From NCBI GenBank assembly GCA_964035545.1, contig OZ037770.1, positions 3,566,662-3,630,661 of the forward strand: a DNA stretch of 64,000 nt. The letters are read 5' to 3'. The notes beneath the pieces are model-generated. The model had not been told where the DNA came from and did no database searches. It saw only the letters and a list, made by a program, of their open reading frames with translations. How positions within the stretch are numbered: position 1 is the stretch's first letter; every line of letters begins with the position of its first letter. Source of the stretch: Bugula neritina. Its lineage: Eukaryota; Animalia; Bryozoa. This document shows, piece after piece, positions 4,968-57,599 of the stretch. The position numbers and the translations under genes are program-made.

Positions 4968-4968
4968 G

Positions 4969-4988: not shown

Positions 4989-5027
4989 TAGTTACTGTTG
5001 GAGACAATGAAAGGACATTAAGATATC

Positions 5028-13495: not shown

Positions 13496-13645
13496 TTAGG
13501 AGTTTTCTTCTCTACTAAGCCCATCGAAGCCAGGAAACAGGTAAAGTCTTTTACGGAGAGGAAGAGTCTTCCAGATTACAATCAAATTCCTGCTTATCTC
13601 TGAATCTTCATCTGGATACAGTTTCTTAACTAGTTTAGTCTGTAC
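13496..13645 (-). CDS. Terminal caspase small-subunit exon
   Basis: VQTKLVKKLYPDEDSEISRNLIVIWKTLPLRKRLYLFPGFDGLSREENS*; KxLYLFPG is the typical caspase C-terminal strand; acceptor CTACAG. Confidence 0.85.
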   Translation of the reverse strand, partial: VQTKLVKKLYPDEDSEISRNLIVIWKTLPLRKRLYLFPGFDGLSREENS

Positions 13646-16600
13646 CTGTAGAGTAAGTAATGGCTAGTAAGATTGTTTATCAATTCACTAATATAGCTGT
13701 GATAAAATGTAAATTTCAGCTTTTAGAATATTGTATCCCACTTGTAACAAATATGAACAGAAAACACTTTGGGAATTGTCTACCGCAGTCATATCATATA
13801 GCATTCAGCAGTACAGTGGCACTAGTAGATTAGCAAAATACAAGAACATATTGACAAGGAAGAGAAACTATAATCAATATAGTGAGCCAATATATGCTAA
13901 CGGAATTTTAGGAGCAAAAACTACAAGTTAAACTGGAGAAAACTAGGAAGGACGTTCTGTTACTAAAACTGTAGTAGATACATGTATTCTCTTTTAAAGG
14001 ACAAAAGGGTGAACAAACATAGAAATGAATAAAATGATATGATGAGAAATTATATTTTATTTTTTTAAACAAAAGTTGAACTAGCTAACAAAATATTTTG
14101 GTTTTTAAACTTGCCTGCTGAAAGATGGTGTAGAGATCACGGTGACAGGCATGTTTGTAGATTGAAGATACTAGAGCTCTAATTATAGGAGATCCATACT
14201 CAGGATGTCTCTTTGATGCTAAAATACAATTAAGTACAACCAAAATCTATAGGTTTATAGCCAGACCAAGTTTAACAGGTTTTAGTTATGGCATAGGCAT
14301 ATTTAAAATCTCAAAGTTCTGGAACACATTTTACTTTTTTCAGTTTAGAAGTTATTAGAATCAAAGCCCTTACAAAATGTGGGGATAATACAAAATCGAT
14401 AAACCACATCTTATACAAGGTACAACAGCTCAGACAAACTTATAGCCAATCACTGTCTCTTATTATACTTACAGCAGACGTTACTCTTAAGAACAAGAAG
14501 ATTATCAACATCCAGTTTTGTCATATGTTCTTCTATTCTATATTCTGGTGGTAAGACAGGTCTGATAGGTCTTATTACACTGGGTGTTTCAGGATATACA
14601 ATATCATCATCAGCTTCAGAATGTGTAGAAGAGACAGCTTCAGTTTCTTCTTCTTGAGCTGCTGCAAGACCTGATCTGTCTGGATTCACATCAATGTTTG
14701 CTGCAACACATATAATTTAGTTATCAGGGAAGTAGGATAGATCAAAACATCCATTTTCGTAGCAAAGTTGCCTAACCAATTTTATATGACACATTTCTGA
14801 AGATGTTCTTTTTTTTCTGTAAAAAATCATCTTAAGGAAACAAAGAAGTTTTGACTACTGTGTAACCACTCAAATAAGTGTGTCTGTTTTTATTACAAAA
14901 CAATATTCACCTTCGCTGGAAGCTTCTAGGATGACAACTGTAGGTTTAGGCTTTAAACTCAAAGGAGCGAGCAAATCATAGAAGTCTGTAAGGTTGACCT
15001 CCACAAGGTCAGTTCCATAGATACAGTTATCTTCACCACCATGAGTCATAATAACCAGTATTTGACAACCCAAGCCATTGTTTTTTTCTCCTCTTATCTC
15101 AGACTTCACAGCAGACATCATTTCCTACAAATTTGGAAATAATTATAATCATGTTGAATAATTGATACAAGGTTATGATAACTAAATAAAAGAATAATTT
15201 TCCAACTAGCAAAAAACAAAATTTTGACCAGCAATAAACATAATTTGGGTTTTTTAGTCAGGCCTTAATTTGAAACATTGATAAACTAAATAGTTAGGTG
15301 ATTGCGTCAATTTTTAAGGTTTGATAAAACAAGTGTCAGGTTTCATATAGATAAACTGATTGAATACTATTGCTTTCAGTTTAACAATATTATACCTCTG
15401 CCTTTAGGTCTGTGTGTGTCTCAACATCAAACCTGAGAGACTTCAACATGACAGACATATTCTCAACATCAGCATCTGAACCTTCCCTGCATAAGTCTGG
15501 TCTTTCAACAAAGTTCTTGTTGTTTATTATCAGAGCTTTTCCTCTCTCTCTGGTCATACTGAACACCTGGATACAATTTTCAGACAATCGCATACAGTAG
15601 TGACATACAAGTTATATGCATGTTTACATCATGATGTGAAGCATTCCAAAAATGATAATTACAATTATTCTAGAGCTCAAGATGCCATTTCGAGCCTCAA
15701 AGTTAGAAATCTCATACAAAGCAGTATCTCTCTTGCAAAATCAATTATTTTATTTTTATGCTAGATTTTAATTTCATTACTATTTAGCTATAAAACTGAA
15801 TAAAAATTTTTTGTTTAAAAGATCAATTGTCAGCTTTACCAACAAAAAATTTAAATAGTCAATTAAGTGCTAATTGGTATTTTGGCGAGAGACATTCATG
15901 ATATGATTTAATGATGTTACAAAAGTTATTACACTACATGGTTCTTTTTATTGAAAATATACATGTTCACATGTACACAAAAGCATATATACAATGAGGT
16001 AGACAGAGTGGTCGAACACACAGTTGGTCAGCTACAGAGAGAGAGGGTGCTGTACAGCACACGGACCAATGGCCAGGGGAATTCGTCATTTACACGATGA
16101 TAATGTAGTCCACCGAGAAGGTGTCTTTAACAGGCATGCTTATGTAGGTAGGCTCTCACTCTTGTAGTGAGCGCGATCTGTGCCGAGCTTGTCGGGCACG
16201 GAGCCTCCGCTTCAATCGCCCCACTGAGTCTTTGAGTTGGTATAGGCCTGTTGTTGTATCGAGCAGGTCTGGAGCTAGTTGTGTAAATTCTGCTTGTAGT
16301 CACAGAAGCCGCTCTTCTACTGTGGCCAATCGGCTGGGTCCTGGCGGGGGTGGAGTAGTCTCTGGGGCAGGGGGTGTTGTTACTTCTCCTGGTTCGGGGG
16401 TGCTACTAGGATTAGCAGGGTTTGTTAACCGGGCATTTACCATGGGGGACTTCTGGCGGGCAGACAGCAGTAGTATTTAGAAACCCGAAGTTAACGCAGC
16501 CAGGGTTAGAGCCTTCTTGACGACTGGCTCGATGACATCCAAGTACTGGGGGAAACTGTCTTCGTCCACGACGTGGCCTTCTCCCGCGAAGCAGCTCATC

Positions 16601-19600
16601 TTATGTACTATAACTTGGTACGGGCACACGTCATGGAACCCGCACGGGCAAAAGTGCAGCAGGAAGTGCGCGTCTACATGTAGACGCAGAGAGCGGTGTG
16701 AGGGGAATTCCTCGAGGCAGGCCTGACAGGTCTGGTGGGGTCCGCTGGGTCTCCAAGCTTCTTTGATCCTCCGTTCTGTTGCTGGCGACACCCAGCTGTG
16801 CCGTCGGCGGAGCACCACGGGCAGTCCATGTTTTGTTTCTGGTTCTTCTTCCATAGGCAGACACAGGATAGTCAAGGGCATCCTCACTAAGAATATCATA
16901 AATTTCTCTCAAAATGTAGTTCAGGTTCTTGAATAATATTGCTCTGCGGGTGGCATGCGTGTTGCCTACTTGCATTTGTTTAGCCTAAGATTAAACTACA
17001 GCCAATGAGCAGCAACCTTCATTAGGGCTGCGTTATCTATCAACATTCCATTATGGATGCTACATAAACAAAGTACAAAGCAAGCTATTCATTATAGCCT
17101 GCCAGTTAGCAAGCCTGTAATTATTATGTACACGCCAATATCTTCTCATCCCTACGTGCTCATTGAAGCGTGAAGTGCTGCGCGCTGCTAGTTTCTTATG
17201 AAAAAATATGGCATTTTCAGTGTATAAATCACCAATTTATGGGCAATCTAGCAGAGTTATTGGAAAATGAAAAACATTGCACTGAAGAAATATCTCAGGA
17301 TTCTAGCAGTGCAATTTTTATTCAGATATCATCTTTTGCTGCTGAGATATTTTACTGGTACTGAAAAGTCAGCTTTTCAGGCAAAATTGGCCAAAATTGG
17401 GCAGTTTTTTGTCTATTACTTTGCAAAAAAAATGAAAATTGAAATTTCCAAAAAAAGATGCACTGGGGAAAAAGAAGATCTACAACATAGTTTTTAAATT
17501 TTGACTCTAGCATAATTAGGCGAGATTTTATTTTACTGGTACTGAATTCTTATATGATTACAATGCAAACCTCAGCAAGGCAGTTGCAGCTAAAAGGTTG
17601 CCCTTAACTATCCTGTGGAAGGGTTGGCTGATCCCGTGACCGGGAGGTGGTCACTCGAGTGTTATCTGACAGAGTTAACAGTGTTAAAGATTATACCCTG
17701 AAGTACCGCCGGCATGTACAGCCTGGCAGGTGCTCTGTTCAGTTAAACACTCGCGAGATTCAGGGTAATGAATAGTTGATCGAGAACACACCCGCTATGG
17801 CAGATTATTAAAATCTAAGTCGATGTGTGTTCCCACCACTGTGTTTCATTTTCAAATCTCCAGCTCGTTAACTGGTACAGTTAGAGCTGACTGATGTAGT
17901 CTAGTTTCCGTACCAAAAACAAAACTAACTCACCCTTCGATCCAGAATAGTAAGACATTTTGAATGAGAGTGGTAAAGATTATTGTTTAGTGGCACGTCT
18001 ACTCTTGACTGCATCAACATAGGAAAAGACCGAGCAACGTGGTTGTGAAGCGTGGCTGGGACTTTTTGCTTCCGGCGGATGAATCTTATTTGTGATTCCG
18101 CCAAAGCAAAAGTTGGTACTTTCGTGATGTTCACAACTCCCACGTTTCTTTGACTGTCTTCCCATACGATACCTAGCTAGACTTTCATAACTGCCGATTG
18201 TAGCGCGGTCATGTACGAAGTCTCTGAGGTACGCTGGGGGTTGCCTAGTATGGGGTCCTGGAGATATCGTCACTGTGGGAGGCAGTGTGCTCACCCGTGG
18301 ATTGTTACGTCTCACGGGTGGTGTTTCCAGCCTGTTTGTGACGGTTGTTCCTACCTTGGTGTCTCCGTACAGAGCCCCTCCCACGGGGGGTTTTTGCACT
18401 TCCGAATCCGTTTCTGGTTCCGGGAGTGGTGGTGGCAGGCCTGACGTTGGGGGCGGTGGGCGCGCTTCCAAGGGCGGAAGTGGCCTTTCCTACTTTGCCA
18501 AGTCTTCCTGGGAGGGGTCATGCACGTGTTGTCGGCCAAGTCGACAATCTCCGCTTACCAGGACCTTCTAGCACAATGCGTCTGCCGCCCCACTCCACCA
18601 GGGAAACGGCTATGCTTGTTGGTCTGGCAGACTTCGCACTGTCTCACTCTGCGCCGTATGTCCCGCTCCATGTTGGGCCAGTACCACCGGAGTTGTAACT
18701 TGGTGACCACCCTGGACTCCTGCGTGAGTCTGCTGGTGGGTGTCCCGTATCAACTCCCGGCGGATGACAGCGGGGCAGACTATCCTCTCCCTTACTGGCT
18801 GTCTGTTGTTGGCGGCTAAAGTCATGGTCAGCAGACCATCTGGCCCGATCCGCAGAGAGTTCCAACGTTTTACAGTACAGCCGTAACTCGGCGCGTCCCT
18901 GTCCCCGTTGTCTACCACTGGGTCGTCGCCCTTCCTGTTTTGCTCGGTACACGTTGGCTACCACCCCAGGGAGGTTTTCCTGGAACTTCGGTAGCTCCCT
19001 AACGTTACCAGACCAGACAGGTTTGGCGCGGAGGCTTTGTGTTGCCTCCGGAGGTGTTTCGGGCTTTTGTTGGAGTTGGTCCTATTCCAGTGTTTCCAAC
19101 TGGGACCGTGGGGGACCTCTGCTCTTCTTTCTCGGGCCCAACCTCCTCGGGGGCTGCCGAGTAGGGGCAGTCTCCGCTACCCGTGGTACATCACGACGGA
19201 CCGCTCTATTGAGGCGGGCTTCATGGTCTGCGTGGTGGGGTGCATCATTGTATCCGTGCGGCAACCTGGCCATAGCATGGCGCTCTCTGTTGCCTGCACG
19301 GCCACCCCAGTGGCCGCCACGCGTCCCAGGATTATGGAAGGTGCAAGGTGGAACGGTCCTCCGCCCTTGAGACAGGCGCTGTCGAGGACCTTCCGTTGTA
19401 GCTCCCAACGACGGCCCGATATCTTCCTCCTGAACAGAATGGAAACGGCCCAGCATGGACCCAAATGATAGGTCTACCGGCTCTGAGGAGGGGTTGACGC
19501 ACTGCATCGAGATTTCTCGTCGCCCGGTAAGCTGGTTAAAGCTGTGGGCAAGTTGGGTTCTTGAGTGCGTGCTTTTGACAACTCCCAACCTAGAGGTCTG

Positions 19601-22600
19601 GCTACCGTCTACTTTACAGTAGATGGTAGCCCGGTATTGGCCTGGTATCGTACAGCTTTGTACTACCTGCACTCCTCCCGCTAGAGGACGACCAAACTTA
19701 TCGACACAGGCGAGCTCTCTGTCACCCATGAGTATCGCATATTTACTGAAATCGATGCGACATCCGTGTCATTGTAAGAATGGCATCCCGGGGATAGCAT
19801 CCTCGTTGAGCTGTCCGACAATGAACGTCTCCTGGATGGTCTGGTTACGGACGCATCCAGTAAGCTCAATAATGCCGTAGAAGGGAATGCACGACCCATC
19901 TGCCAGAGTGCCAATAACCCCCTCATACGGTGCCAACACGTTCCTGACCTTAGTGCTGAGGGTGTCAAAGAACTGACGGCTCAGGAGGTTGGTGGTGCAA
20001 CCCGAGTCTAGAAGGAAGTTGGCAGGCTTGCCAGCTATTATTCCTGGCAGGAAGTAGCTACTCCCATGAGGTTGCATCTGTACGTGCCGTAGTTGCACCT
20101 CCCTCGCTGTGGGTCGAGGAGTCCATGGTTGGCGACGGCTATTAACCAGCTGCCGAGGTCGGGGCGGTACACCTTGCGTTGCCTGTACTGTTTTTCTCAC
20201 AGGCTCTGAGGTCAACAGCTTGTTGGATCTGTTTTGGAGTGGCATAGAGGACACAGGTGGCGAGTGGGTTGAACAGCCTACTTGCTGCGATGGTCGCCAC
20301 TCCACAGTATCCTCGCGTGGCGCCCGGCGAGGTGGCCGGCGCTTTGTCTTTCCTGGGTAATTCACCGGCGGCCCGCAGGAAGTGGGAACATCTGCGGGCC
20401 GTGGTAGTTTAACCCTTGTTGGAGTTGAGTGCAGTTTCTCTGGAATTGTCCAAGTCTCCCGCATTCCAAGCAGAAGTTATGCCCGGTGCCTGGTGACTGT
20501 GCCGGCAGCCTGCAAGGCTCGTGGGCAGTGTCTACCTGGCTTGGGAGAGCTAACGTGGAGTCCGGTTTGGCTAGCATGTTGGTCATCTGAGCGACCTTCG
20601 ATGCCACCTTCATCTGTGTCACGTTAGCCACCGCGGAGGGTTCCCCATTTGGTTTGGCAGGAGCAGTAGAATGCTCCGTGGCTACCTGGCAGGAGGCCAC
20701 GCGGTTCCGGTGCATGTGACTCGCCAGGAGATAAGCTTCTCCTACTGCGAGGGCACCCTCGGCTGTGGTGACTCACCTTGCCTGGAACTGGTGATGGAGT
20801 CCCAAGTCAGTGATGGATTGCATGAAAGCATCATAAGTATACCCCTCACGGTTCGCTTGAGGCAGATCGCAAAACGCGATCTGTGCCAGCCTCATCACCG
20901 TGGCAGCATGCTCCTGCAGCGGCGTGTGAGGATAATGCCTCAGCCTTTGTAGGCGGGCCCGCGCATCTATGGCAGAGATACCAAAACGGGCCCACAGAGA
21001 AGCGAAGATCCCGTCAATGTCAGGTCCCGCTCCGTAGGGCTTAGCCTTGTCCGTCAGCGCCATTCTGAGTTTAAGCAATGCCACCCTTGGTGGCCACCGT
21101 GCAATTTCATCACATCTTGAAATTCTTGGATAAATTGCACTATTTTTTTTTGCCCGTAAAGGTGGGCGCCTTCAGCCGGTACCTGTCCTCACTGGGTTCT
21201 CTGGGAACTTTCACTTCTTCCAACACTACTGGTTCCACAGGTATAACAACATTGTCTTCCTCATCTTCATTTAGTGGAATGGGTAGATCCGTACCTTCTT
21301 CTGCCATCCTGATGTACGCAAGATCCCGCCGCTGCCACCACTGTTGTAATTTGCACAATTACTATGCGTGGGGTTTTGCTTGCGTATTCAGTACTGCTTT
21401 TAACTAGTAATTACTAGGGTAGCTGATGTGTAATAACCTTTATTATATACAATAAAGTACAATACAAACATTACATCAATTTACAATACAACATCAGTCA
21501 CTACTAATACGTGTATACACTCGGAGTCCTCGCTCACAACAACGTGATAGTTGCTAACTACCCGGGAACTGTCAATCGGGGCGGAAGATCATCTTCCGGT
21601 GCTTCTTATTGGATAACACATTAGGGTCTTTAGTATTCCCCAAACGGAGAGGAGATAGTTATACATTATGATACTGCGTTACCCACTACAATATATTGGA
21701 GTACAATAAAGGATAGTGAGTATAAACCTTCTTATTTATTTATTAATAAATATTCTCAGCAAAGAGTCACTGTGTTCCATCAGCTAATAACCCACACCAA
21801 TAATTACATGCAGCTAAATAATAACATTCCACGCATAAAATTATTACAATACTCTACTGGGTGAAGAAAGGAGAGCTGCTATAACTCATGTTCATCAGCT
21901 GTAAAATTTACCTTGTCAGTGTTTGAGAAGAGTTGTTTTATCTTTGTGTTGGTTGTTGGCTTTAGTTCAAGTTGTATTAACTTCATGTCTTCCTTATTCC
22001 CTTCATCAGGGTACAGATTGTCATCATCTTCAGAGAGATCACTCAGATCACCATCATCAAATTCATCTGCAGTCACATTATCAGACAGATTATTGTCAAA
22101 ATTTGAAACCATAAACTACATATCTGGCTTAGACAAGAGAAGAAGCAATTAATTTTAAAAGTCACAATTAGATATGATTTGTAGGGAAATGTAGGGCAAA
22201 ATTTGCAAAGCCTATAATTTTACCAATGCTGCAGGTTTCAAAAGTAAGTTCTGTCTATAAAATTTTACCATTTGATTTGTTCTGCTCTCTTCGAAGTTTG
22301 AGCTCAGAAAGGAACTTCTTCAAGTGAATTGTTTCTGCTTCAGAAAAAGTCTCACCTGAACAATACAGACAGAATTTGTAACATTAAAACTAGATGAAAG
22401 GCATAATTAGAAGAATATGATATATGATCAAAAGCTTATGTTTCAAGTTTGCACGTTTTATAAGTTAGACTGAAAGTTTATTAAAGTAACTGCGTGTGTA
22501 GTTTGCTAACATCCATCTGTTATTGAAATTCATTAATGTCTGGAAAAAAAGATTAGATATGATTTGTTAGTGTAAAAAAAATATTTAAAAACAGCTTAGA

Positions 22601-25600
22601 AAGAAAATCAAAAAAGAATCATAATTATGTGTAAACATACATGGATGAATTAAAGCACTGGGTATCGGTTCATCATTACACAATATCTTTGAAGATCCAT
22701 GACACTTCTTGACATCTGGTGGCAGTTGGCTTTTCAAAGAACGGAGACACCATTTAGGATGCAGGAACCTTTTAGGGCAAGAAACCCCCAGTATGATGCA
22801 GTGAGCACAGATGCAGGCAGTAACTGGTCGACTAGCAGTCCAAGTTTCCATGACATGTTTGAGAATGTTGTTTGTGGCTGAAATAAGTTTCTCCCACATC
22901 TTGGAAATGTGAGGAGCATCAGATGAAACATAGAGTAAGACTCTTCTAGAATCATAGTCATGTGTCAGCTGTGTGTATATTTCATCTTGATAGACATTAG
23001 CTCCATTTCTCTTCACCTTCATTGTGGCAAACTCTTTAGAAAACAGTTCTAGCAAACCAACTGTCATTTGATGGTAGACATGCTGGGGCAAAGCCAGACC
23101 CTTGAACTTTACCTCGGTGTGAAGGACCATATCCTCTGGTGAGGTGTATGACACACTGTAATGTTCCTTAGCAAACTGAGGGGTTATAAAGTAGGGTTCA
23201 TGGACATCATTTTCCAAAGGGCCATACAACAAACGGAATGTTCTAAGCAAGCAAACAGCAGTTTCAACATCATGACAGCTTTTAAATAAAGTTTCCTTTG
23301 CAATCAAATATGTTAGAAGAGATTTCATCATTAAGCCTGTTGTTTTGAAGCAATTTACAGACTCTTCAAATTCTTCTGTTTCAATCCTCAACCCTTCTTT
23401 GGAAATGCATGGTTGAAACTGGTCAACTCTCCTCTGCCAAATATTTGGATCATGATGATACAAGACACAGAGTAGTTTGGTTACTTCTGTGATCTTGTGA
23501 AATATGTACGGTTTGAGTGCTTCAATATTCTTATACCACAAGACTTTACCGCAGTCATGCATGTATGTGAGAATAGTATCTAGCTGATTTTGCTCCACCT
23601 CAAAGCCTTCTTTTGTCAATTCCAACAGAATAAACCAGAAGGAGCTAAATGCTCCGCTTAAAGACAAAACTTTCTCATTCACTTCTTCCCAGATCAGTGG
23701 CAAAAGCTTAACAAAGTGCTGAATGTTTAGAAGAAGAGAGTTTTTTATTGTTTCAAATTCAGCATACTTGTCTTCTTTTCCAATCTGATAAATATCTTCA
23801 CTAGCAAAAACCTTTCCATTTGATGAATTGAAATGCTGTATTTTCGAGAAATCTCCATCTGAACTTTTCTCTTCATTGAGAACTTCTTTGCAAAGCGCTT
23901 CAGATATGCTAAGAAAACTTTCTTTAAGCTGTTGAAACTGTTCACTCTGAAACTTATCTTTGTGTGTGAAGACAAGCTTAGGTGGGCCAAGAGTAGGATG
24001 AGCGAGATAGAGGTGAGACATGAAGTCAAAGGCCAACTTTCTGACAGCCTCTTCCTTTGTAAACTCATTTGAAATCTGATCATACTGCTCCATGTTGACT
24101 ACAATTACTGGTACACAATTCTGCCTCAGTGTTAAATGGTATGTAATATGGTAGACCTCCTGGCCTCCCATATCTATGAGACGAAGAGTTGTACCGTCCA
24201 CCTCCACCTCTTCCACATTAAACACCTTTGTAGTCTCATCATACTCTGCATTCGAACTTCTGTGAGTCAGAACTCTTTTTCTGTCAGTGCTCTGTAATGT
24301 TCTGATTAGACTGGTTTTACCTGCCATGGTGTTTCCCACCACGACTATTGTAGCAAATGGAAGATTTCTACCAGCACCCTTAGCCAAGTCTGTGTAGTAT
24401 TGCCGTACAGCATCTAATCCCCTCTCACAGACTTCTAGTGGAGGAGATGTAAAGGCATAGCAACCCCATGTTATGAGGAGACTAAGACGTGTTAGCTGTA
24501 GTATCTCAGGATTCAAAGATGTCATGGATCTGTTGTAGGATATATTCAGTGTGTACAGATTACTCAATGCGCACACTGAAGATGGGAGACTGGTGAATTT
24601 ATTCTCTGATATGTTTAGTATCTGTAACTTCTGTAGACTCTGTAACCTAACAATACATTATAGTTCTATGGTCAGCACAAACTAGAGGTAAGTGTGATCT
24701 ACTTGTTGTAATAAAGATACAATGATAGTGAAACATTTATAATAGAACACAGAATTTAGTATGAAATGGCAGTGAATACAGTGAGCTTATTATGTAAAAC
24801 CCTTATTGTTTAGAGTAGTACAGTAGAGAATTGTTATTCTAATATTTGCCCTTTTCATTTCGTCACAATTGTCAAGTATTATTTTCAAGCTCTACAATTA
24901 ATATTTCGAAACATTTACAGCACTACAGTTCTATGAATAATTATTTGGTCAAAAATAATAAATAAGTACCTTATTATTGTCACTTTAGCACAATTCCTAA
25001 CGCTACCGTAAACAATGCTGTTCTATATAGCATGTAGTTGATTATAACTGCTTACACTGATATTTTATTAGATATGTATTATAATGAAAATTATAAAAAC
25101 TAGATAACTAAATTCTGCAGGATATACAGTATCTATAGTATTCATTTGGCAGAAAAACGCCAATTTTCTACTTAGGTTCACAATCCTGGATAAAGCTTTT
25201 TTATCTCCTGATTATTCAAATATAGGGTCCAAGTAAATGTTTTTAGGTGGGTGTGGACTTTTTATCCTTGAGAATTTTAAGAAATTTAAAATGGGTGCTA
25301 GGCACCAGACGATTCTATATAATTTAAATGTACCTACCCATCGGGGGGGGGGGGGGGGGGGGGCTAAACTTAAGGTTCCAATGATTTGAAATCTTTAGAA
25401 ATTAAACTGCCTTTATCACGTTCATTATTAAGTAATAGGCAAATTATACCCAAGAGGAACTAGGCAAAATCTTAATCACTCATTTTTTAAAGTTTAACCT
25501 AACCTTACTGGTCTAAATTTATGAAAATTTACTATATGGGGTGATATTTTTATGCTGATCACAAATATGTCAACCAAATAAAGCTGAAGAAAGTTCTGAA

Positions 25601-40600: not shown

Positions 40601-43600
40601 TTTACGATGCTGCTTCAATCAGGGCTACATAATATATCAACATTCTATTGTGGCTGTCTCATAAACTAAGTACACAGCAAGCTATTCACTAGCCTGTCAG
40701 CTAGCAAGCCTGTAATTAGTAATCTATGAATTAGTACCTCCTCATCTCTTCATCTGAGTGTTGTGCAAGGGTGATTTAATTAGTATTTTTATTTCACAGT
40801 TCATATAAAAATGACAGCTATGGGCAATGAACTCAAAATAGCCAGTTCAATGGCTATAGGGACTGCAATTCTATTCTAGCTAATGTCAGTCAGCTTATTT
40901 AGGCCTTTCATATGCTTACTATTAACTGAAAAACTAAAGTAAAAATATTAAAGCCAAGCAAACATTTTGGGTCTGCTGGACTGTATTTATGATAAGCTTG
41001 ATAAAAGTTTACCTCATAGTTTATAAAAAATAGTTTGCATTTTATTTTGGCGCCAAAAAATTATTAGTATATTCAATGAAATAGTAAATTTCTGGCTTGG
41101 CAATTAATTATTTGATATCACATTTAATCTCTAAAAGCATTTTTAATATCAGTAAATGCAAGCATTTAAGACAAAAAAAGATAAACATCTTGGACGCTAC
41201 TTAAAATTAAATAACCAAAGCTGCACGCACACCATACCCCAAACGAAACAACTCTACAAGATATGTAGATAACTGATAAGGGCAAAATTATTAGCATATA
41301 AGAGTTCAGGCTTGCTAAATGAAGCCTCACCTAACCTAAAAGTTAAAAACTATGTTGCATATCTTCCTGTTGCTCAGAGCAACTTTTTGAAATGTTCAAT
41401 GAATAATTTTAATTCTGATAATAATTCTACTAATTTTCGGACTAATGCATTTTAGGAGCAATGCACCTTCAGAATATTGCACCGTCCCCCCATTATTGCT
41501 TGTGCCATTATTACCAAGTCTTGCCATCTTTAACCTGGGTACCAACTTGAAATGCATGCTGCTTTGTTATTACAGCATGAATGAAATATTTATTTGGAAT
41601 TTTGATATTGATGATGTTAAATTCATAAACTTATGTGTTGAATTTACAATCTTAAAGTAAGCTATTCTAGCAAGCTAACCCACCAACCCCATTCTTGCAT
41701 GCTTTTAAGGGTTATAGTTGATTGTATATGTGCTTGTTTAAATAAAGATGCTACCTAAGCTGTTATTTGCAGCTTTACACTATTTACCAAACTTGCACTT
41801 TAATGTAGCTATAGAAACTATTCTGAAAAATGTTTTGTACATTAGGAAGCACAGATAAAAAATTACCATGTGAAGATTATTTTGCTAAAACTCAGTGCTA
41901 TCCCAGCCAATAAAATTTTACCTTAAAGTAGTATATTTGTGAACTGCCTTAGCCTCTGATACTTAATTGTAGTATAGTGTTTACTGGCTAATTGTATTTT
42001 CTAATTCTAATAATAAAGGGTACAACAAACGATTATACCAATAATTTTTACTGAAGACTGCGTGTCAAACTTCTAGCTCACCTTGCCATCTATTCTTAAT
42101 TACAGTTTGAAATACATCTTGCTGGTCTAAGACCTAAGTTCTTGCATTGAAACATAGACTTTATTCAAACTAGTAAGACTAAATTAATTAGTACCAACAC
42201 TGCAGGTAACGGTGGGTAGTTGGGGATTTGAAAAATTTTACATCAATGTTCCATCTTATCTACTCTTTCATTTTTCATTATTACTCTACCATTATTAATA
42301 GACCATGTAAAACTCAGCCAATCAGCGAAGTGTACCAGGTCAATGTCTTACCATTGTAACTGATATAAAATTCTGCAAGTTCAATTGCAAAATGCATGCT
42401 TCTAAAAGCTAGTTGTGCAACTTTTTTTTCATGCATTATTTAATTTCATATCTTAAATTGATGACTCTTGAAATGATTTTTTAAAATGTCTAAATTAAGT
42501 GTTTATAAAACGCAATTAAAAATTGCATGTCTAGAAAAATGACGTGGTACACTTTTGCAACTTAAGGCCAATTATTACATAACTGCCAGCTTAGTAGTTA
42601 TTTGTTGTTGCAGCTTGAATGGGTTATTGTTTAGCATTGGAAGCTTGCAGTAAACATCTGTGAATTTGGTACATGACTTTGATTGGCTGGTTTTTGAATG
42701 GCCCTTTAGTATATGCATCTGGATGGCTGGGTAGTGTAGACTCCGCCTACATCTAGCTAATGTACAGTAGCCAATCCACAGTAGTATTACAAAATTTCTG
42801 TTTAACAAATGAAATATTCTGGTCATTTGTTTTGTACTTTACAATAGTAAATATTCTATTCAACTATAATTTTATTGTATGTAAGCCATGGGAACTACTA
42901 AGAGGTTAAATCAACCACCCATGCTGGTAATATTGTTGCTCGCAGTAATAGCAAGTCCACACCATATAGATATACACATAAGCTATTATGTGCAGCTTAT
43001 GAATGCTGAAATGACCCCATTTCTTACTTTCAATTTGAAAAAAATTGTATTACATATTCTGCCACTTCTGCACCAAGAATTTGTTTTCCTTTTAAATTTT
43101 GAAAATAGTAGTCAGTTTCTGCAGCAGTCAACTGCATCCACAATAAACAACGTAAGTTTTCAAATAAACTATAAATATATGAAATATTAGTGTGGAAACT
43201 ATGTAATTTAGTTCTTGCTATGATGAAGAATTACAAGAATATTATATTATAGAAGCTAGATATAGATTTCTATAAAATGGCGCAGGTAAAAATAACACAT
43301 TTTTACTTCAAATTCTAAATTTCATCAGTCACCAATGGTGGCTGTAGATTACAGAGAGCATAGCAGACTATCATAATCATAAGGATGGTCAGCCCACTGA
43401 GCAAAATCCAACTCCAACCTTTCATTTGGGTTACCAACGCACTAAAGCATATAATGTAAGACGAACAAAAAACAGTGGTTTTAATGAAACATGTGGAGGA
43501 AGCGAACAGAAAACGTTATCAACAGAGTCAGCTGATATAGAGCAACAGAACTCATCTGACAGCCATCCTCATAGTCAGACTTCATCAGAAGTAACTGAGT

Positions 43601-46600
43601 TACCAGAATCATCAACTACTCAGAAAAAAAGATCTGCACATTCTATTGATAGACGAAAATCAAAAGTTGGAAGAAAAGGCTCAAAAAGATCCATGTTTAA
43701 ACAAAAAGCAACTATTGAAAAAGTAAAAGTTTTTAAAACTTTCACCACTACAGATGAGCAAACTAAATTCTATACTGGAATACCTACACGTTCTTTATAC
43801 TATTTTTTAGCAAGGTGAAAATTATGATTTTCTAATTGCAAAGATAGACTATGGTTTATTACAAATAAACAATGCAAGTCTCACTATGCTAAAATTTCTA
43901 CATTGATTAAATTTGATGTGTAGTAAAACTGTCATTTTAATTAAATTTGTTGCAGTGTGAGTACATCATTCATACATTTTTTATTAAAGATGTTGTTTTA
44001 TGTAAGATATTCATAAATACCACAGTGGTCATCTGTATGCTTTGACTTATTTAGTTTAGGGTTTTATTTAAACAAGCAGCAGTATTTTATTCGTGGACAA
44101 ATTGACTCACTTTCTCTAGGAAAAGTAAATTGTTTTGACTTAAATTTTCCTTGGTTATTTTAAAGCTTATCAAAAGTGGCCTCCTAATCTAATTTTTAGC
44201 TGAAACTAACTCAGTGTTTAAAACTAAAATGGTTTACACTGGTTACTAGTTTCACTTATTCACAAATATTATTAAATGCTATTCTAGAAATAATATGGGT
44301 TTGAATTAGTTATAGTATAATTATAAAATGAAGTAATAATTGTTTGTCCACAGTATTTGTTTAAACTCATAACTTCATTCAAAGCATGTATTCATACAAC
44401 TAGCTTACCATGTACTGTTACAGTATTATGTAACACATGTTGACACACATTACATTCTGTTTGGATGGTGATATATTGGGTCAAGCCTTCAGCTAGCAGT
44501 TCTTGAACTTCATAGTTGTTGCAAAATATAACTGAAGCTACTTACCAGAGGGTAAAAACTGCTGAATGAATACAAACTAAGCACAAAATTTATTTAGCAC
44601 ATACATTATAATTTGAATTATAATTTAATTTTCATTCTTTATTTTCTATATTTAGATTTATATGTCCGAAGATGAAAGTTCTTATTCTCCAAAAAAAGTT
44701 AACAGGACAAGATAGACTTTTATTGGCTTTGATGAAGCTGCGTCAAGGTTTACAGTTTCAAATACTTGCTGGCCTTTTTTATATCTCTAGATTGCTAGCA
44801 AGCAAAACCTTCCAAAACACATTAGATATTTTAGCAAGAGAACTGAACAATCTAATAGTTTTTCCAACAAGAGAGAAGCTGAACATCCCTCTGAGCTTTC
44901 AAAGCCAATATGCTACCATATATTTATAGTTTATTTGAAAGCTTACGTTGTGGATGTTGACTGCTATAGAAACTGACTACTATTTTCAAAATTTAAAAGG
45001 AAAACAAGTTCCTGGTGCAGAAGTGGCAGAATATGTAATACAATTTTTTTCAAGTTGAAAGTAAGAAATGGGGTCATTTCAGCATTCATAAGCTGCACAT
45101 ACTAGCTTATGTGTATATCTATATGGTGTGGACTTGCTATTACTGCGAGTAACAATATTACCAGTATGGGTGGTTGATTTAACCTCTTAGTAGTTCCCAT
45201 GGCTTACATACAATAAAATTATAGTTGAATAGAATATTTACTATTGTAAAGTACAAAACAAATGACCAGAATATTTCATTTGTTAAACAGAAATTTTGTA
45301 ATACTACTGTGGATTGGCTACTGTACATTAGCTAGATGTAGGCGGAGTCCACACTACCTAGCCATCCAGATGCATATACTAAAGGGCCATTCAAAAACCA
45401 GCCAATCAAAGTCATGTACCAAATTCACAGATGTTTACTGCAAGCTTCCAATGCTAAACAATAACCCATTCAAGCTGCAACAACAAATAACTACTAAGCT
45501 GGCAGTTATGTAATAATTGGCCTTAAGTTGCAAAAGTGTACCACGTCATTTTTCTAGACATGCAATTTTTAATTGCGTTTTATAAACACTTAATTTAGAC
45601 ATTTTAAAAAATCATTTCAAGAGTCATCAATTTAAGATATGAAATTAAATAATGCATGAAAAAAAAGTTGCACAACTAGCTTTTAGAAGCATGCATTTTG
45701 CAATTGAACTTGCAGAATTTTATATCAGTTACAATGGTAAGACATTGACCTGGTACACTTCGCTGATTGGCTGAGTTTTACATGGTCTATTGTGCCATTA
45801 TTGCTTGTGCCTGTGCCATTTCTGTCAGACACCCTTTCTGTTATATGAAGTTATCACAAAGGGGTTTTCTAAACGGCGTGGATATACTTTCTCACAGCAA
45901 AGAGCAAAACTTAGAATGTTTCACTCAGAACTTACATTACTAATTCTAAATAATAGCTCAACTGTAAACAAACCCATTATATGCCAGCTAGCTAATTCAT
46001 TAGTTTCATACTAAGTTCCAAAATGCTACATAATCACCCAAATGCTAAATTTAATAACTCATTGTTGCTATGATAACAAGGACAGAATGTATTGTCCGTT
46101 GTACCAGCAACAGCTGCAGCTATAAGCAGCCCAGTAAGCCTTGAGGAATATTTTCAAACACATAATTTTCAACAGCGCGGCCACGATTAAATTTTAAAGT
46201 ATTAATAAATTCTATGCTCAATATATGCAAAATTTGCTACAAATATTTTTAGAAACATGCAACGCGCACTTGAACTTGAAAAAATTTATTTAAGTTATAA
46301 TGGTGAGATATACCAGCGGTGTCATTCTACTTAGCCAGTTTTCACTTATACCATATTTGTAAATTTTAGCGTAATATATGTATTTTATACTATTATTTAG
46401 CACATAATAGAAAGCAAGAAGCCACCAGCAAGCTACTTACAGTAACAAAGCTTCTATAAGAAGCCATCTTGCACAAACCTTAAACCTAAAGGTAAAAGAT
46501 AGACAAGATATAATAAGAAAAAGTTGCAATATAGCAGTACGTGATATACCATGATATGCATTTGTGCATTTTATTCTGTTATTCTGAATAAAATAAACTG

Positions 46601-52600: not shown

Positions 52601-55600
52601 GTTTGCCAAACAACGTTGTTTGAAATGTTCTATGAATGTTGTATAAATGTTTAGTAAAACAATTTAGTTAAAACATTTATAAAACATTTTGAAAAAACAT
52701 TGATCCAACCTTTTTATCAAACATTCTATTAACCTTGGTAAAAATCATTTATTGAACGTTGAATTAAAACATTGTCGTTACGTTTGAAAGAAACGTTGTA
52801 TTGAAATGTTGTATAAACGTTGTATTATTGTTTTATTGAAACAGTTTGTGCAAAACGTTGATAGAATGTTTTGAAAACAACATTAACACAACCTTTTTTT
52901 CAAACACTTAATAAACCTTTGAAAAATACATTTATTAAACGTTGGGTTATAACGTTAATTTTATGTTTAGAACAAACGTTGCTTTGAAACATTCTACCAA
53001 CGTTTAATGGATGTTTTGTTACAACGTTTGGGTCAAACATTTAATGAACGTTGTGATATACATTTATACAACAACTTTTCTCAACATTTATTAAATGTTT
53101 GACCAAAATGTTGACTTTAAACATTTATCAAACATTACCATAACGTTAAACGGAAATGTTTGATTCTAATGTTGTGAACAAAACCTTCTGACAACACATC
53201 CAAAGGTTGTATAAACGTTTCTTGTTAGTTGGGGGCCCATATTCAACTCTTTGAGTGATGTGAGTGATGACACAACTTTTGGTACTGTGTTGACAGGATT
53301 CCATCCTATGTAGAGTTTCTCTAACTGAGTCAGCTGACATATACTGCAATATAAAGTGTATGATGAATGTAGACTGACTTATACATTTTATAATTGCAAA
53401 AATTGCTATAACTACCATATAATTATGACGGATATGACAACTACATGTACCATCACCTTGTTTCTTCACTACAGCTTTATTCAACTTATCATGACACTGG
53501 AATACTATATAGGCGAAGATATATTAATGTACCATAATGGTATACAACTATTTAGGGGAGCAGCCGTAGTCTAGGGGTTAGAGCATATGCCTAGCAAACA
53601 CGAAGGTCATGGGTTTGAGCCCAGACAAAGGCCATTGGTGATATTAGGAAAAGCATCCAGTCATAATTGCTCCTGTGCCTCATTTAAACAATTCCTTAGC
53701 CCGATTTAGACAGGGATAGTGACTATAAATTTGCGTGAGAAAAAAATGGTATACATAACTATTTAATTATTATACTCAGTAAACACAAGTAAACTAGATA
53801 TAATGACTTATTATCAATTACACTTTTTAACAGCGTAAGGATATACTATAATACAACGATCGACATACCTTAAAACTATGGGGTTTTCACATTATTGCAA
53901 ACCATTACATACGTCATATATAGATGACTTCAAAAAAATACATTTTTTATTTTCCCACTTTATGTTGGCACACAATAATGTTAGTTTTAAACAACTCATT
54001 AACTGTAATTGTAAAGTTAGCACTGAACATAATTAATTCAAGCAGTAAAAGTAACATAGTGTAATGAATACGTAATAGTTAATCAAGCATTCAGCGTTGT
54101 GTTTAACATAACGTTTCACTCAAATAGGCTATCACATCACTTGATTCCCGCCTACGCAGCGACTGCATGCTAGTTGTAAATTCACTAATTAGATTGCAGC
54201 ACGCCCCCGCCCATTGGCTGTGGCTTTAAGCTTTGGCAGCCCGGATGTTTCAGTGCAGACGTTGAACCTACGCAGCTATAGTAGAATAGTAGCTGCTAGC
54301 GATGCAATTTCATCACATCGATAACAATCAATTTTAAATGATATAATTCATAAAATATAAATTAATTTAAATTGGAATTAACTTAAAGAAGCACAGGTTA
54401 GTTTTGTCTTTCAGTATTTGTAATAATTTGAGGCTTTCCTTAAGTATTTTTATCTATTTTTAGCTATATAGATAAGAATAACTATTTGGTTTATTAAACA
54501 TGTTTATAAGTTTGACAATTTTTAGAATGCTAGTGCGGTCAGTGTATGATAGAATGTATGGCTATGTGTTTACTTTATAAGAGGTTTTTCATAAAATTAC
54601 TACTCTAAAGGCAGGCTCTCTAGTGATTGATCAGTTTGTCACTAGATAGTATAAATATTCTAATTGGCAGTTAAAGCCTTATTTTTACACTTACATGCAG
54701 TATTTTAATGCAGCTACTAATTCAAGTCAACATTGAACATAAGTTTTAATCCCTGTCTTTGAGCTATACATTCATTTTTACTAATTGTGTCAGCATTTGT
54801 TTAATTGCAGTTATCACCTAATGTCATTTTTATTATAGTTTGATATTTTTTAGTAGACCTGTAATACCGTTTCATAGAAACAAACTCACCCTAGGTAGCC
54901 ACTAAAAGAAGGCAAGAGGTGATTAATTCAAGATCTGTATACATGTTTGATTATTTTGCAATTTCACGAATAATTTTCTGTTTGTTTTATTTTAAAAACC
55001 TGTTATAATTGCATATATTAATAACCTACTTTTACAGTTTCTTACGGCAGTTGGAATAAGTAAAAATAAAATACTAACACCAACACCATGCAGTACAATT
55101 CATCTATAGTTAGTGGTGATGCTAAAGTAAGTGACACAAACCTCTCAGGAAGAGTAGATAATCCACAGCTCATCAGATTCAACTCTTTAAGTGACGTGAG
55201 TGATGACACAACTTCTGGTACTGTGTAGAGAAGATTATCTTCTATGTCTAGCTTCTCTAACTGAGTCAGCTGGCATAAACTGTAATATAAAGTGAATGAT
55301 ATATATTCAGTGTGCACTACCATAATATTTTATACTATATTAACCTATTGTCTTAAACCAGGTAAAATTATATATACACTATATGCAACTTAACTACCAA
55401 ACAACTTATTGTAGCATATAGTACATGTTGCAAAGCATGAAAATATAGCAGTTTATTATAATAGCATAAAAGTATTCAATTATTATACTCATTGAATGCT
55501 AAAAAACTACAACTAACTGCTAACTATTAATTACATTTTCATATCACAAGAATATAATATAATGGCATACTTTAAAATTATGTTATTTTTACAATATTAT

Positions 55601-56773
55601 GAACTATTACATATATATTCCTTTAAAAAATGCATTTCATGTTTCTCAATTATATAATGACATACTGTAATACTACTTGGTAAGCATATATAATAATGTC
55701 AAATATTGAATGCATGTTTAAAAAAAAAAACAATGACACAAACCTCTTAGGTAGATTAGATAATTCACAGCTCCTCATATTCAACTCTTTAAGTGATGTG
55801 AGTGATGACACAACTTCTGGTACTGTGTCGAGAGGATTCCATCCTATCTCTAGTTTCTCTAACTGAGTCAGCTGACATAAACTGTAATATATAGTGAATG
55901 GTATATGTAGTCTACTGTATCATATAATGACATAATCTGTAGCTACTCAGTTATAATGTAAATTATGTAGTAAACAATTTTGTTGAGACAGGGCACAACA
56001 AAAAGATTATATTATGGCGTGTTATAGGTGTATTGGATGCCCTGTGTAGAGTTGACTGATTAGATTTGTTTATAAGGTTAGCCTGTTAGTTTAGTTATAG
56101 ATAAAGGCTACTCTACAATGTAATGCTATATGGCATGACTGTAATAAATAGTATACAATATTATAGCTGATCTGACATAAATTAGCCTCAATTTGTCATT
56201 TTGATAAATCTGTTATTTTTGGATTTAGCGTTATATAATATATATGTATGCCTCCTACTTGTACATGTATGTGATATAGTACTATGCTACACATATACTG
56301 TATAGTATGTTACCTTTGGTACTCAACTATATGAAACATGCTTATATTGATGATATAATATCCATAACAGTAAAAACAGTTTTGTACTGTTTAAGTTCTA
56401 CAACTGTTTTGGCTTGTGTAGATACAATGTTTTGCTTATTACTATAGGTTTATATACTGCATGATAATATTATAAGTATGAATGTAAGTGACGACAGTTA
56501 ACACAACTAAATTTATTTTACAGCTATATACTGCAGAAATACTAACTTGTCTAGACTTGCTCTGTCAGTCAGGTTAGAAACACATAGACACAGGGCTCTA
56601 CCAGCAACCTCTCCAATGTTGTTTGGAATTCTCCCTTCCAGTTTGAGATATGTGATATGACAACTTCCAACTTCACGTTTTACCTCAGCAGTATTGTATG
56701 ATTTGGTAATAACATACTGTATATCTGACCAGTCTACAGGAGGCTGACCAGAATGTCTGAACCAGATTCTCAT
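13496..56773 (-). CDS. Multi-exon LRR-Roc-COR-caspase (ROCO/MFHAS1-like fused to a C14 caspase-like domain), ~1250 aa; one LRR exon TE-disrupted
   Basis: Exons 56773-56547, 55881-55744, 55279-55142, (53343-53236 + 31812-31783), 24646-22641, 22355-22269, 22066-21912, 15566-15396, 15124-14911, 14700-14473, 14218-14115, 13645-13496. All junctions are GT/GC-AG with compatible phases; total 3756 nt = 1252 codons with no internal stop. Confidence 0.7.
14115..14218 (-). CDS. Caspase small-subunit exon (GC-AG donor)
   Basis: SSKRHPEYGSPIIRALVSSIYKHACHRDLYTIFQQ resembles caspase p10 SxR...GSxFIxAL; donor CAG|GCAAGT. Confidence 0.8.
14473..14700 (-). CDS. Caspase inter-subunit linker / start of small subunit exon
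   Basis: ANIDVNPDRSGLAAAQEEETEAVSSTHSEADDD...DNLLVLKSNVC; TTGCAG acceptor, GTAAGT donor, phase 1-1. Confidence 0.75.
14911..15124 (-). CDS. Caspase large-subunit exon with His motif and degenerate Cys motif
   Basis: ILVIMTHGGEDNCIYGTD...KPKPTVVILEASSE; TTGTAG acceptor, GTGAAT donor. Confidence 0.88.
15396..15566 (-). CDS. Caspase large-subunit first exon
   Basis: VFSMTRERGKALIINNKNFVERPDLCREGSDADVENMSVMLKSLRFDVETHTDLKAE is the typical caspase start (RG.ALIINN, R.GS..D). Confidence 0.9.
16156..16885 (-). pseudogene. Element 2 extra 3' ORF (tandem zinc finger, Pro-rich, coiled coil), with in-frame stops
   Basis: CQACLEEFPSHRSLRLHVDAHFLLHFCPCGFHDVCPYQVIVHKMSC ... RLATVEERLL*LQAEFTQLAPDLLDTTTGLYQLKDSVGRLKRR. 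Confidence 0.7.
16885..17570 (+). mobile_element. AT-rich insertion in element 2, including a partial copy of the MULE-like MITE internal sequence
   Basis: 16885-17180 aligns with 29227-29470 and 40500-40760; abrupt GC drop within GC-rich Gypsy sequence. Confidence 0.6.
21342..21690 (-). repeat. 5' LTR of element 2 (349 bp)
   Basis: TG...CA termini; shares terminal sequence CCACGCATAGTAATTGTGCAAATTACAACA with the element 1 LTR; followed by PBS. Confidence 0.88.
21912..22066 (-). CDS. Acidic linker exon between COR and caspase
   Basis: DEFDDGDLSDLSEDDDNLYPDEGNKEDMKLIQLELKPTTNTKIKQLFSNTDK; CTGCAG acceptor (phase 1); AAG|GTAAAT donor (phase 0) matches the first caspase exon. Confidence 0.65.
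22269..22355 (-). CDS. Short post-COR exon
   Basis: CETFSEAETIHLKKFLSELKLRREQNKSN; TTCAG acceptor, GTAAAA donor, phase 1-1. Confidence 0.6.
22641..24646 (-). CDS. Large exon: last LRRs, Roc GTPase, COR and Cys-rich tail (MFHAS1-like ROCO)
   Basis: Intact ~668-codon frame. LRR cap PPLEVCERG, P-loop GNTMAGKTS, G3 DMGGQEVY, G4 FTHKD, COR motif YMHDCGKVLWY, tail CICAHC. Confidence 0.93.
27190..28525 (+). mobile_element. Gmr1-like Ty3/Gypsy 3' remnant (integrase followed by RNase H end, PPT, LTR)
   Basis: Integrase C-terminal half ALFAYREVPQESTGFAPFELLYGR..GPF, then RVMRWAM*LHNFRIKVE*IKGKDNVGADYLSRI. PPT AGAATGGGGGG; LTR 28003-28525 TGTCACAAA...TTTGTGACA. Confidence 0.85.
28526..28920 (+). mobile_element. 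RTE-clade LINE 3' fragment
   Basis: EMRML...VTNDSIRE...MRRRPLQWY...KRKRVKPKKKLMDTVKDD matches the C-terminal region of RTE ORFs. Confidence 0.7.
29102..30198 (+). mobile_element. Non-autonomous Mutator (MULE/Rehavkus-like) element with 9-bp TSD
   Basis: TSD ATCAGGTTT at 29093-29101 and 30199-30207; TIRs built of tandem CCGAAGGT(G/C)CATTG units. Confidence 0.85.
31783..31812 (-). CDS. 3' piece of TE-split LRR exon
   Basis: (G)NCKLSELPER plus GTTTGT donor; downstream intron homologous to 58120-58278. Confidence 0.8.
33090..34420. repeat. ~65-bp minisatellite, about 21 copies
   Basis: Recurring core AAATGGGTGGGCAACTTCAA(G/T)TTTATGTACATTTCACTATAAA. Confidence 0.9.
40422..41489 (+). mobile_element. 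Second copy of the MULE-like MITE
   Basis: Colinear with 29102-30198; TSD CCATTATTT / CCATTATTG. Confidence 0.85.
42297..45791 (+). mobile_element. PIF/Harbinger-ISL2EU-type element with ~880-bp inverted arms and truncated transposase
   Basis: Arms 42297-43181 and 44917-45791 are near-perfect inverted copies. Internal TDEQTKFYTGIP and LTGQDRLLLALMKLRQGLQFQILAGLFYISR (transposase HTH region). Confidence 0.8.
46365..47755. repeat. ~370-bp direct duplication (46365-46740 and 47380-47755)
   Basis: Colinear high-identity blocks seen directly. Confidence 0.85.
53236..53343 (-). CDS. 5' piece of TE-split LRR exon
   Basis: ICQLTQLEKLYIGWNPVNTVPKVVSSLTSLKELNM(G); TTGCAG acceptor. Confidence 0.85.
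53556..53730 (+). mobile_element. tRNA-derived SINE
   Basis: A-box TAGTCTAGGGG and B-box GGGTTTGAGCCC, followed by core TGGTGATATTAGGAAAAGCATCCAGTCA. Confidence 0.6.
55142..55279 (-). CDS. 138-nt phase 2-2 LRR exon (2 x 23-aa LRR)
   Basis: LCQLTQLEKLDIEDNLLYTVPEVVSSLTSLKELNLMSCGLSTLPER; TACAG / GTTTGT splice sites. Confidence 0.9.
55744..55881 (-). CDS. 138-nt phase 2-2 LRR exon
   Basis: LCQLTQLEKLEIGWNPLDTVPEVVSSLTSLKELNMRSCELSNLPKR; TACAG / GTTTGT. Confidence 0.9.
56547..56773 (-). CDS. Probable N-terminal exon of the ROCO-caspase gene
   Basis: Open frame MRIWFRHSGQPPVDW...RASLD ending at a phase-2 donor GTTAGT compatible with the LRR exons; could instead start at an acceptor near 56818. 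Confidence 0.5.
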
Positions 56774-57599
56774 ATCCTCTGTAACATCATACAGTGACAG
56801 TGTAATTACTACACAGTGCTAGCAGCTGTGATGCCAGGCAGCTTTAGGTTTACGAAAGTAAAAATTAGAAATAAATATATCACTGATTCCTGAAAACAAC
56901 CGTTTTATTTAAAATCTTTGAAATTATGCTGCTTCGGTTTCAATAAAAGCCCCCCCCCCCCCAAGTAATACTAGCATATTATATTCTTTGCTATACAATT
57001 TTAAAATAATAGTTTGAATGTTGATTTAAAGCAGCCGAAATTAAGCCGTGTTAGTATTTTATATTCACTAATAATTGGTCCAAATACCAACATCAAGTTA
57101 AAACTTTCTATATCTGACACTGCGTACTTCCTATACCCTATCAGTTACACAGATGACAGCTGTACTGCAGGATGATCATAGAAATACTCGAACTAGCGTA
57201 GCTATAGAGCACTTTCTGAATTGTGGAATCTAGAGCTATATAAGTATTTCAATGTTTCTCATATTTCAACTATAGAAAAAGGCATACCAATATAGAAAGG
57301 TTTCTGAAAAGTCTTGTCACAATAATATTCTTGTCAATTTAGATGAAACATTTGCTAGTTTTGCTCAAATAAAAAAAAATTTATGCATTGAAAACCAATA
57401 TAACTGATTGCATTCAAAATAATATTCAAATGAATGCCAAGTATATACTGCATCTAAATACAAATAGTGCGATAACCTTGGCATACACCATGTGCTACTC
57501 TCCTTCCCTCAATCGCCTTTGGACCATGTAGTTTACTTACTGTTCTACAAACAAACCGGCTACATATCTCTATCCTTAACTGACATTTGCAGGCATGCT

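Follow-up and report, generated by a model that had tools for sequence, protein, structure and literature searches.

A probable pseudo-caspase in a lineage-expanded family of LRR-Roc-COR-caspase genes from the bryozoan Bugula neritina

The 64,000-nucleotide stretch of Bugula neritina DNA analyzed here (hereafter the window; C6:3566662-3630661 of a 216-Mb assembly) carries on its minus strand a split gene predicted to encode, in a single chain, leucine-rich repeats (LRRs), a Roc GTPase, a COR domain, an acidic linker and a caspase fold. We favor the reading, at a probability of about 0.6, that this copy is a pseudo-caspase member of a lineage-expanded LRR-Roc-COR-caspase family and is likely a non-catalytic partner of catalytic paralogs. 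The single-chain architecture is a family trait, as is evident from the order of exons in paralogs, from RNA contigs, and from fused RefSeq models in the bryozoan Watersipora subatra and in amphioxus. What is new in the window copy is its catalytic cysteine codon, which reads TCC (Ser), together with a second clade of paralogs in which the same position is a serine encoded by AGC. A sequence-only reading of this stretch had proposed a single-chain sensor-switch-effector immune receptor; the architecture proved real at the level of the family, while the window copy, with a serine in place of its catalytic cysteine, is probably not a proteolytic effector.

The caspase fold is divided among five small minus-strand exons. 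Exon A (15396..15566) begins the p20 subunit with RGKALIINN and encodes an S1-pocket arginine within CREGSDAD, and exon B (14911..15124) encodes the catalytic histidine (IMTHGG) and, at the position of the catalytic cysteine (ILEASSE), the serine codon TCC at 14920-14918. Exon C (14473..14700) encodes a long acidic and proline-rich intersubunit linker that runs to a conserved LDVD|N and is followed by the first p10 strand, exon D (14115..14218) continues p10 with SKRHPEYGSPIIRAL and closes with a GC donor (CAG|GCAAGT) where most paralogs have GT, and exon E (13496..13645) completes p10 with RLYLFPG and a TAA stop at 13496-13498. Exon A matches Peptidase_C14 (PF00656) with 40.3 bits and effector caspases in the PDB with an E-value of 2e-8 (nearest caspase-3/6/7), and exon B, nearest CED-3, scores 19.8 bits, just below 21.4. 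Two Watersipora proteins (P0035 and P0047) have a C14 domain that aligns colinearly with exons A, B, and D. The motifs quoted in the sequence-only reading were recovered, both in these small exons (RGKALIINN, THG, GSPIIRAL, RLYLFPG) and in a 663-residue open reading frame (ORF) upstream of them (GNTMAGKTS, DMGGQ, THKD). The caspase domain that it described as whole has a complete fold and no catalytic cysteine.

At the QACxG position the glutamine is replaced by glutamate across the paralog family; the family reads (Q/E)ACS, and the window copy reads EASSE where paralogs read EACSE. The window serine aligns with the serine that occupies the QAC(R)G position of a crystallized CED-3 chain (4m9r). 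The catalytic histidine is present, within an M[TS]HG motif conserved in all paralogs, as are both S1-pocket arginines (CREGSDAD and SKRH), residues that by sequence would bear on protease activity and specificity for aspartate. Caspases with a Cys-to-Ser mutation have no catalytic activity and are employed as inactive mutants. Because its catalytic cysteine is a serine, the window copy would be non-cutting, and is probably a pseudo-caspase with a caspase fold rather than an active caspase. Conserved aspartate sites, in LDVD just before the p10 strand and in NTD at the border between linker and caspase, could permit processing of the predicted chain.

Serine at this position is a minority state within the family. 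Among 24 paralogs with caspase exons, 18 keep the cysteine as (Q/E/H)ACS or E[TV]CS, and six have serine. The change from TGC to TCC is shared by the window copy and L018, and their nearest relatives (L011, L013, and L015) retain TGC; in L012, L014, L016, L017, and L020 the change is instead from TGC to AGC. Because the two codons differ and the nearest relatives of the TCC copies retain TGC, serine was gained twice independently, once in a TCC clade and once in an AGC clade.

The caspase exons of both serine clades are under purifying selection. Between the two TCC copies the ratio of nonsynonymous to synonymous substitution rates (dN/dS) is 0.35 (Fisher p 0.001), and within the AGC copies it is 0.19-0.41 (p 1e-7 to 0.01) at dS values of up to 0.34. 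Copies that retain cysteine fall in the same range (0.28-0.48). These low ratios in both clades indicate that serine copies were kept as caspase folds long after loss of the nucleophile, which argues for pseudo-enzymes over plain decay. Constraint on the Roc-COR exon is also evident, with dN/dS between the window copy and its paralogs at 0.12-0.27 for most and 0.32 at most. For many of the same paralog pairs, caspase dS is several-fold lower than Roc-COR dS (for L024, 0.16 versus 0.74), and the nearest relative of the window copy is L011 in the Roc-COR exon and L015 and L018 in the caspase exons. This mosaic of dS values suggests that the caspase module has been exchanged within the cluster on contig C6, through gene conversion or recombination of exon blocks.

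The switch module resides in a single Roc-COR exon of 2006 nt (22641..24646), which encodes the last two LRRs, Roc, COR-A, and COR-B and ends in phase 1 at the donor T|GTATGT. The corresponding ORF (22585-24576, minus strand, 663 residues) contains an intact P-loop (GNTMAGKTS) as well as DMGGQ and THKD. Pfam recognizes Roc (PF08477) at 34.1 bits against a cut-off of 27, and scores COR-A (14.5 bits) and COR-B (13.2 bits) below threshold. However, a profile built from 34 homologs of the exon matches the Roc domains of Chlorobium tepidum Roco, LRRK1, and LRRK2, and its match to LRRK2 spans residues 1250-1606, extending well beyond Roc. An AlphaFold model of the exon (mean per-residue confidence (pLDDT) 85, predicted TM-score (pTM) 0.81) matches the LRRK1 structure with an E-value of 4e-21 and a query-normalized TM-score of 0.60, the C. 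tepidum LRR-Roc-COR (6hlu) and RocCOR (3dpu) structures, and an isolated COR domain (3dpt; E-value 4e-10, target-normalized TM-score 0.58-0.64). Because both the profile and the model match ROCO structures, the predicted protein can be placed among ROCO proteins despite its sub-threshold Pfam COR scores, with a Roc domain bearing G1, G3, and G4 motifs and a COR domain directly after it. Complex prediction for two copies of residues 440-650 (COR-B) scored 0.00, a value that neither supports nor opposes dimerization. No Pfam match to NACHT or NB-ARC, as would define an NLR or STAND protein, was found in any exon, and the switch of the window gene is predicted to be a Ras-like GTPase.

Together, 11 minus-strand exons with compatible phases, whose splice sites were read from sequence, join into 3690 nt (1229 codons plus stop) in the order N-terminal exon, three LRR cassettes, Roc-COR, acidic linker, and five caspase exons. 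No stop codon or frameshift interrupts this ~3.7 kb of coding sequence. The sequence-only reading had described a phase-matched minus-strand chain of 12 exons and 1252 codons; the chain itself holds, at 11 exons and 1229 codons, and a search between 24.6 and 56.5 kb for a 69-nt phase-2 LRR exon that could serve as the twelfth found AT-rich chance frames only. Exon 1 (56547..56773), a conserved N-terminal region of 227 nt, starts with an ATG at 56773, ends in phase 2 at the donor AA|GTTAGT, and matches residues 75-118 of Watersipora P0022; an AG immediately before the ATG suggests that an additional 5' exon may precede it. LRR cassettes 1 (55744..55881, an open cassette between AG and GT) and 2 (55142..55279) are each 138 nt long, encode two LRRs, run from phase 2 to phase 2, and match the LRRs of Watersipora proteins by tblastn. 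Pfam LRR families are sub-threshold for single cassettes (cassette 2 matches LRR_4/LRR_8 with an E-value of ~1e-4, under the cut-off for a single exon). Cassette 3 (53185..53343, 159 nt) has a second repeat that is damaged after ELNMG and retains the frame and a phase-2 donor; its use in the transcript is uncertain. The acidic linker exon (21912..22066, 155 nt, phase 1 to 0) lies between the acceptor CTGCAG|AT and the donor AAG|GTAAAT. Its proposed junction with the caspase exons, from 21912 to 15566, and the five exons that follow stand, with splice sites and compatible phases.

A further 138-nt, phase 2-2 LRR cassette lies outside the gene. The cassettes at 55881-55744, 55279-55142, and 58416-58279 differ chiefly at xxLxLxx positions (for example, EIGWNPLD versus DIEDNLLY and NMRSCELSN versus NLMSCGLST), a pattern of variation that would be expected of shuffled and diversifying ligand-binding surfaces. 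The cassette at 58279-58416 belongs to a truncated upstream paralog that lies outside the gene, directly upstream of exon 1. Only the start of its Roc exon is present (57454..57912, minus strand); it stops just short of the P-loop, where …LSLVTIMV gives way to unrelated sequence, and the N-terminal exon of this paralog lies beyond the window at approximately C6:3647541. The paralog is apparently the remnant of a truncated gene.

At least 67 Roc-COR exons, at 59-97% identity, are present in the genome, together with at least 177 exon matches to Peptidase_C14; contig C6 accounts for 31 of the Roc-COR exons, mainly at 2.5-6.3 Mb. The N-terminal exon occurs in 60 copies, and every one is followed by a Roc-COR exon 3.5-39 kb downstream; the 32 kb that separate the two in the window copy are long, yet within this range. 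The survey of paralogs covered 26 of 66 loci, and in 24 of these the linker and caspase exons A-E lie downstream of Roc-COR with order and strand unchanged. In the remaining two, L019 (C6:2531774-2541763) and L029 (C6:2599803-2609792), no linker or caspase exon was found within 7.6 kb downstream, and either the intron is larger or the caspase has been lost. Several paralogs carry in-frame stops. Aligned linker regions keep the AAG|GT donor in 23 of 23 copies and the acceptor AG (at the position of 22066) in the closer clades, and an ATG upstream of the acceptor in the window copy (22112) is GTG, ACG, or ATA in other paralogs, within a stretch that carries frame-breaking indels. Because its splice sites are conserved and the upstream ATG and frame are not, the linker reads as an internal exon and does not open a caspase gene of its own. 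A distinct, intronless caspase gene was also observed at L001 (C4:5000994-5001812), where a single 345-residue frame matches the full Peptidase_C14 domain with 125.6 bits.

The family is transcribed and spliced. Four public runs were mapped to the compact paralog L011, which is 97% identical to the window copy. One of these (X9) covers exons and introns equally, and so represents DNA; in the other three (X1, X2, and X4, from three studies) coverage is confined to predicted exons, with an intron depth of zero. RNA contigs support minus-strand joints compatible with GT..AG between exons E and D, D and C, and B and A. In two contigs from X4, the linker exon is joined to exon A at the position that corresponds to 21912; the few letters in between encode YSMTR and FSVTKR, with which exon A begins in other paralogs. 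Contigs for Roc-COR end 2-11 nt from the predicted donor, with almost no coverage over the in-frame stop or beyond it.

The architecture is not confined to Bugula. An exhaustive HMMER search with the Roc-COR exon returned 93 representatives at E<1e-30, and the full-length matches are RefSeq models of Watersipora subatra. Two of these, P0035 (1419 residues) and P0047 (1413 residues), contain LRRs, a homologous Roc-COR, and a complete Peptidase_C14 domain, colinear with the Roc-COR exon and with caspase exons A, B, and D of the window. A search with the caspase part of P0035 found further Watersipora fusions and two models from the amphioxus Branchiostoma belcheri, P0159 (LRR, Roc 54.5 bits, COR-B 36.9 bits, C14 195 bits) and P0160 (Roc, COR-A 40.5 bits, C14 189 bits). 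The combination of Roc, COR, and Peptidase_C14 thus occurs, among predicted proteins, in two animal phyla or more. RefSeq names the Watersipora fusions "MFHAS1 homolog" or "uncharacterized" and the amphioxus relatives "MFHAS1 homolog." Searches of the literature for an animal Roc-COR-caspase protein found no description, in agreement with the earlier statement that no characterized animal example was known. The animal architecture is therefore apparently undescribed, although it is present unremarked in RefSeq in two phyla and has been predicted for bacteria (Kaur et al. 2021, PMC8195603).

Mobile elements occur around and within the gene. The intron between linker and caspase (15567..21911) measures 6345 nt, compared with 1235 nt in the closest paralog L011, and contains at ~16.0-21.4 kb a G+C-rich insert of ~5 kb (46-56% G+C, against ~30% in the surroundings; the window as a whole is AT-rich animal DNA, at ~30% G+C, with G+C-rich transposon islands). 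The insert carries a gag-like frame, which includes a zinc knuckle, and the remnant of an aspartyl protease. Pfam searches of its ORFs found the aspartyl-protease remnant and neither reverse transcriptase nor integrase, and no flanking pair of long terminal repeats was found. The insert, for which the sequence-only reading had given a 5.7-kb retrotransposon, is therefore a degraded retroelement fragment and not a whole retrotransposon. Within the 28.6-kb intron between LRRs and Roc, an 836-nt inverted repeat (42297-43132 and 44956-45791, 99% complementary) surrounds 1.8 kb with an HTH_Tnp_4 fragment (the N-terminal part of a DDE transposase), a Harbinger-like or foldback DNA transposon. Downstream of the gene (3300-9600, plus strand) lies a G+C-rich retroelement whose broken frames include an integrase core (rve, 48.5 bits) and the remnant of an aspartyl protease.

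Several observations weigh against reading the window copy as a maintained pseudo-caspase. Gene conversion could hold dN down even if this copy were free of selection, and so inflate the apparent constraint. The RNA evidence comes from a paralog, mixes paralogs, and includes no read or contig assigned to the window copy. The copy also has several features compatible with early decay, namely a retroelement that fills one intron, another intron of 28.6 kb, a GC donor, and damage to LRR cassette 3. Most of these points are shared by the main rival, in which the window copy is a young family pseudogene whose frames remain open through youth or through conversion by intact neighbors, with the Cys-to-Ser change as one more lesion and the in-frame stops of several paralogs as precedent. 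We consider this rival unlikely, though it deserves serious weight. Coding sequence of ~3.7 kb in 11 exons has acquired neither a stop nor a frameshift, and AG|GCAAGT is the usual consensus of functional GC donors. Serine was reached twice independently, and the low dN/dS against L018, which shares the TCC serine, and within the older AGC clade indicates that serine copies have long been retained.

The remaining alternatives concern the chain and its chemistry. If the locus were two adjacent genes, an LRR-Roc-COR gene would end at the stop at 22585 and a caspase gene would start from the linker-ORF ATG at 22112. That ORF does begin with ATG in the window and in several paralogs, and none of the RNA contigs listed bridges the Roc-COR exon to the linker exon, so that this junction rests on the drop in coverage, the fit of phases, and conservation, which is a further point against the single chain. 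However, the ATG is replaced elsewhere and frame-breaking indels precede the conserved acceptor, RNA coverage on L011 halts at the predicted donor and all but vanishes over the supposed stop and 3' untranslated region, the phases are compatible (1 to 1), and Gnomon models are fused in both Watersipora and amphioxus. The two-gene arrangement is accordingly quite improbable. Least credible of all is an active protease with a serine nucleophile, which would make the serine variant a full effector. Retention of the histidine and S1-pocket arginines would suit such an enzyme, as would a serine that was reached twice and then conserved, but Cys-to-Ser caspases are inactive, the crystallized CED-3 chain of 4m9r has serine at exactly this position, and clan CD peptidases are not known to use a serine nucleophile in nature.

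For the family of which the window copy is a probable pseudo-caspase member, we infer a sensor-switch-effector mechanism. In Cys-bearing members, the LRRs would bind a ligand, ligand binding would shift Roc-COR, like its counterparts in other ROCO proteins, to a different nucleotide and dimer state, and this change would join two caspase domains for proximity-induced activation, with the Roc-COR module substituting for a CARD or DED prodomain and its adaptor. By analogy with cFLIP and caspase-8, a serine copy would most likely act as a regulator, decoy, or scaffold, paired with catalytic paralogs either by way of COR or at the dimer face of the caspase. The likeness to cFLIP(L) is a caspase fold without catalytic cysteine that is kept by selection, and a regulatory role would follow by that analogy; the difference is that cFLIP has DEDs and no GTPase.

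Among animal ROCO proteins (LRRK1, LRRK2, MFHAS1, and DAPK1), the window family shares the LRR-Roc-COR core, and the model aligns over ~650-730 columns with LRRK1 and LRRK2 structures. Unlike those proteins, which have a kinase, a death domain, or nothing after COR, the window family has a caspase fold there, and it comprises tens of copies with cassette-built LRRs. MFHAS1, the namesake of several RefSeq models, is an LRR-Roc-COR protein with no further catalytic domain, and so differs from the window gene with its predicted caspase domain after COR. The same order of modules occurs in bacterial conflict proteins of the LRR-AP-GTPase(Roc)-COR type, for which a caspase is among ~24 predicted effectors after COR (Kaur et al. 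2021, PMC8195603), and in Runella a bacterial gasdermin system was purified along with a protease in which Roc-COR is joined to caspase-like CHAT (bioRxiv 10.1101/2021.06.07.447441). These bacterial proteins are prokaryotic, encoded in single ORFs, and mostly predicted only, whereas the window gene is a spliced animal gene whose caspase is of metazoan, effector-like type, with best PDB matches to caspase-3/6/7 and CED-3. NLR inflammasomes and the apoptosome (STAND NTPase, LRR or WD repeats, CARD, and caspase) offer a functional likeness, in that a repeat sensor and an NTP switch lead to a caspase activated by induced proximity, but the window family lacks NACHT and NB-ARC, uses a Ras-like GTPase, and carries the caspase on the same chain instead of recruiting it through an adaptor. 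ROCO genes have been proposed as immune receptors in brown algae (LRR-ROCO; PMC11378527), in a paper whose title mentions exon shuffling and so recalls the 138-nt phase-symmetric LRR cassettes of the window gene, and in Aplysia (LRR-ROC-COR-TIR/Death; PMC9334734). These too are expanded or varied LRR-ROCO genes, with no effector, TIR, or Death in place of a caspase.

As a tentative and possible extension, the 67-plus genes might serve as bryozoan receptors, a repertoire for infection or for colony allorecognition, in which a GTP-gated Roc-COR dimer activates the caspase on its own chain and serine copies act as cFLIP-like brakes or decoys by heterodimerizing with catalytic paralogs. If true, the repertoire would be an adaptor-free, NLR-independent counterpart of the inflammasome, and animals, as bacteria do, would wire a Ras-like GTPase switch straight to a death protease without STAND NTPases or death-fold adaptors. 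ROCO proteins are heavily studied owing to LRRK2, and debate continues over the control that Roc-COR exerts on an attached effector; a large natural ROCO family with a caspase effector offers a simple read-out, cleavage, for that control. The two independent and selectively maintained Cys-to-Ser lineages would in turn provide a natural set of pseudo-enzyme partners with which regulation of such receptors becomes testable.

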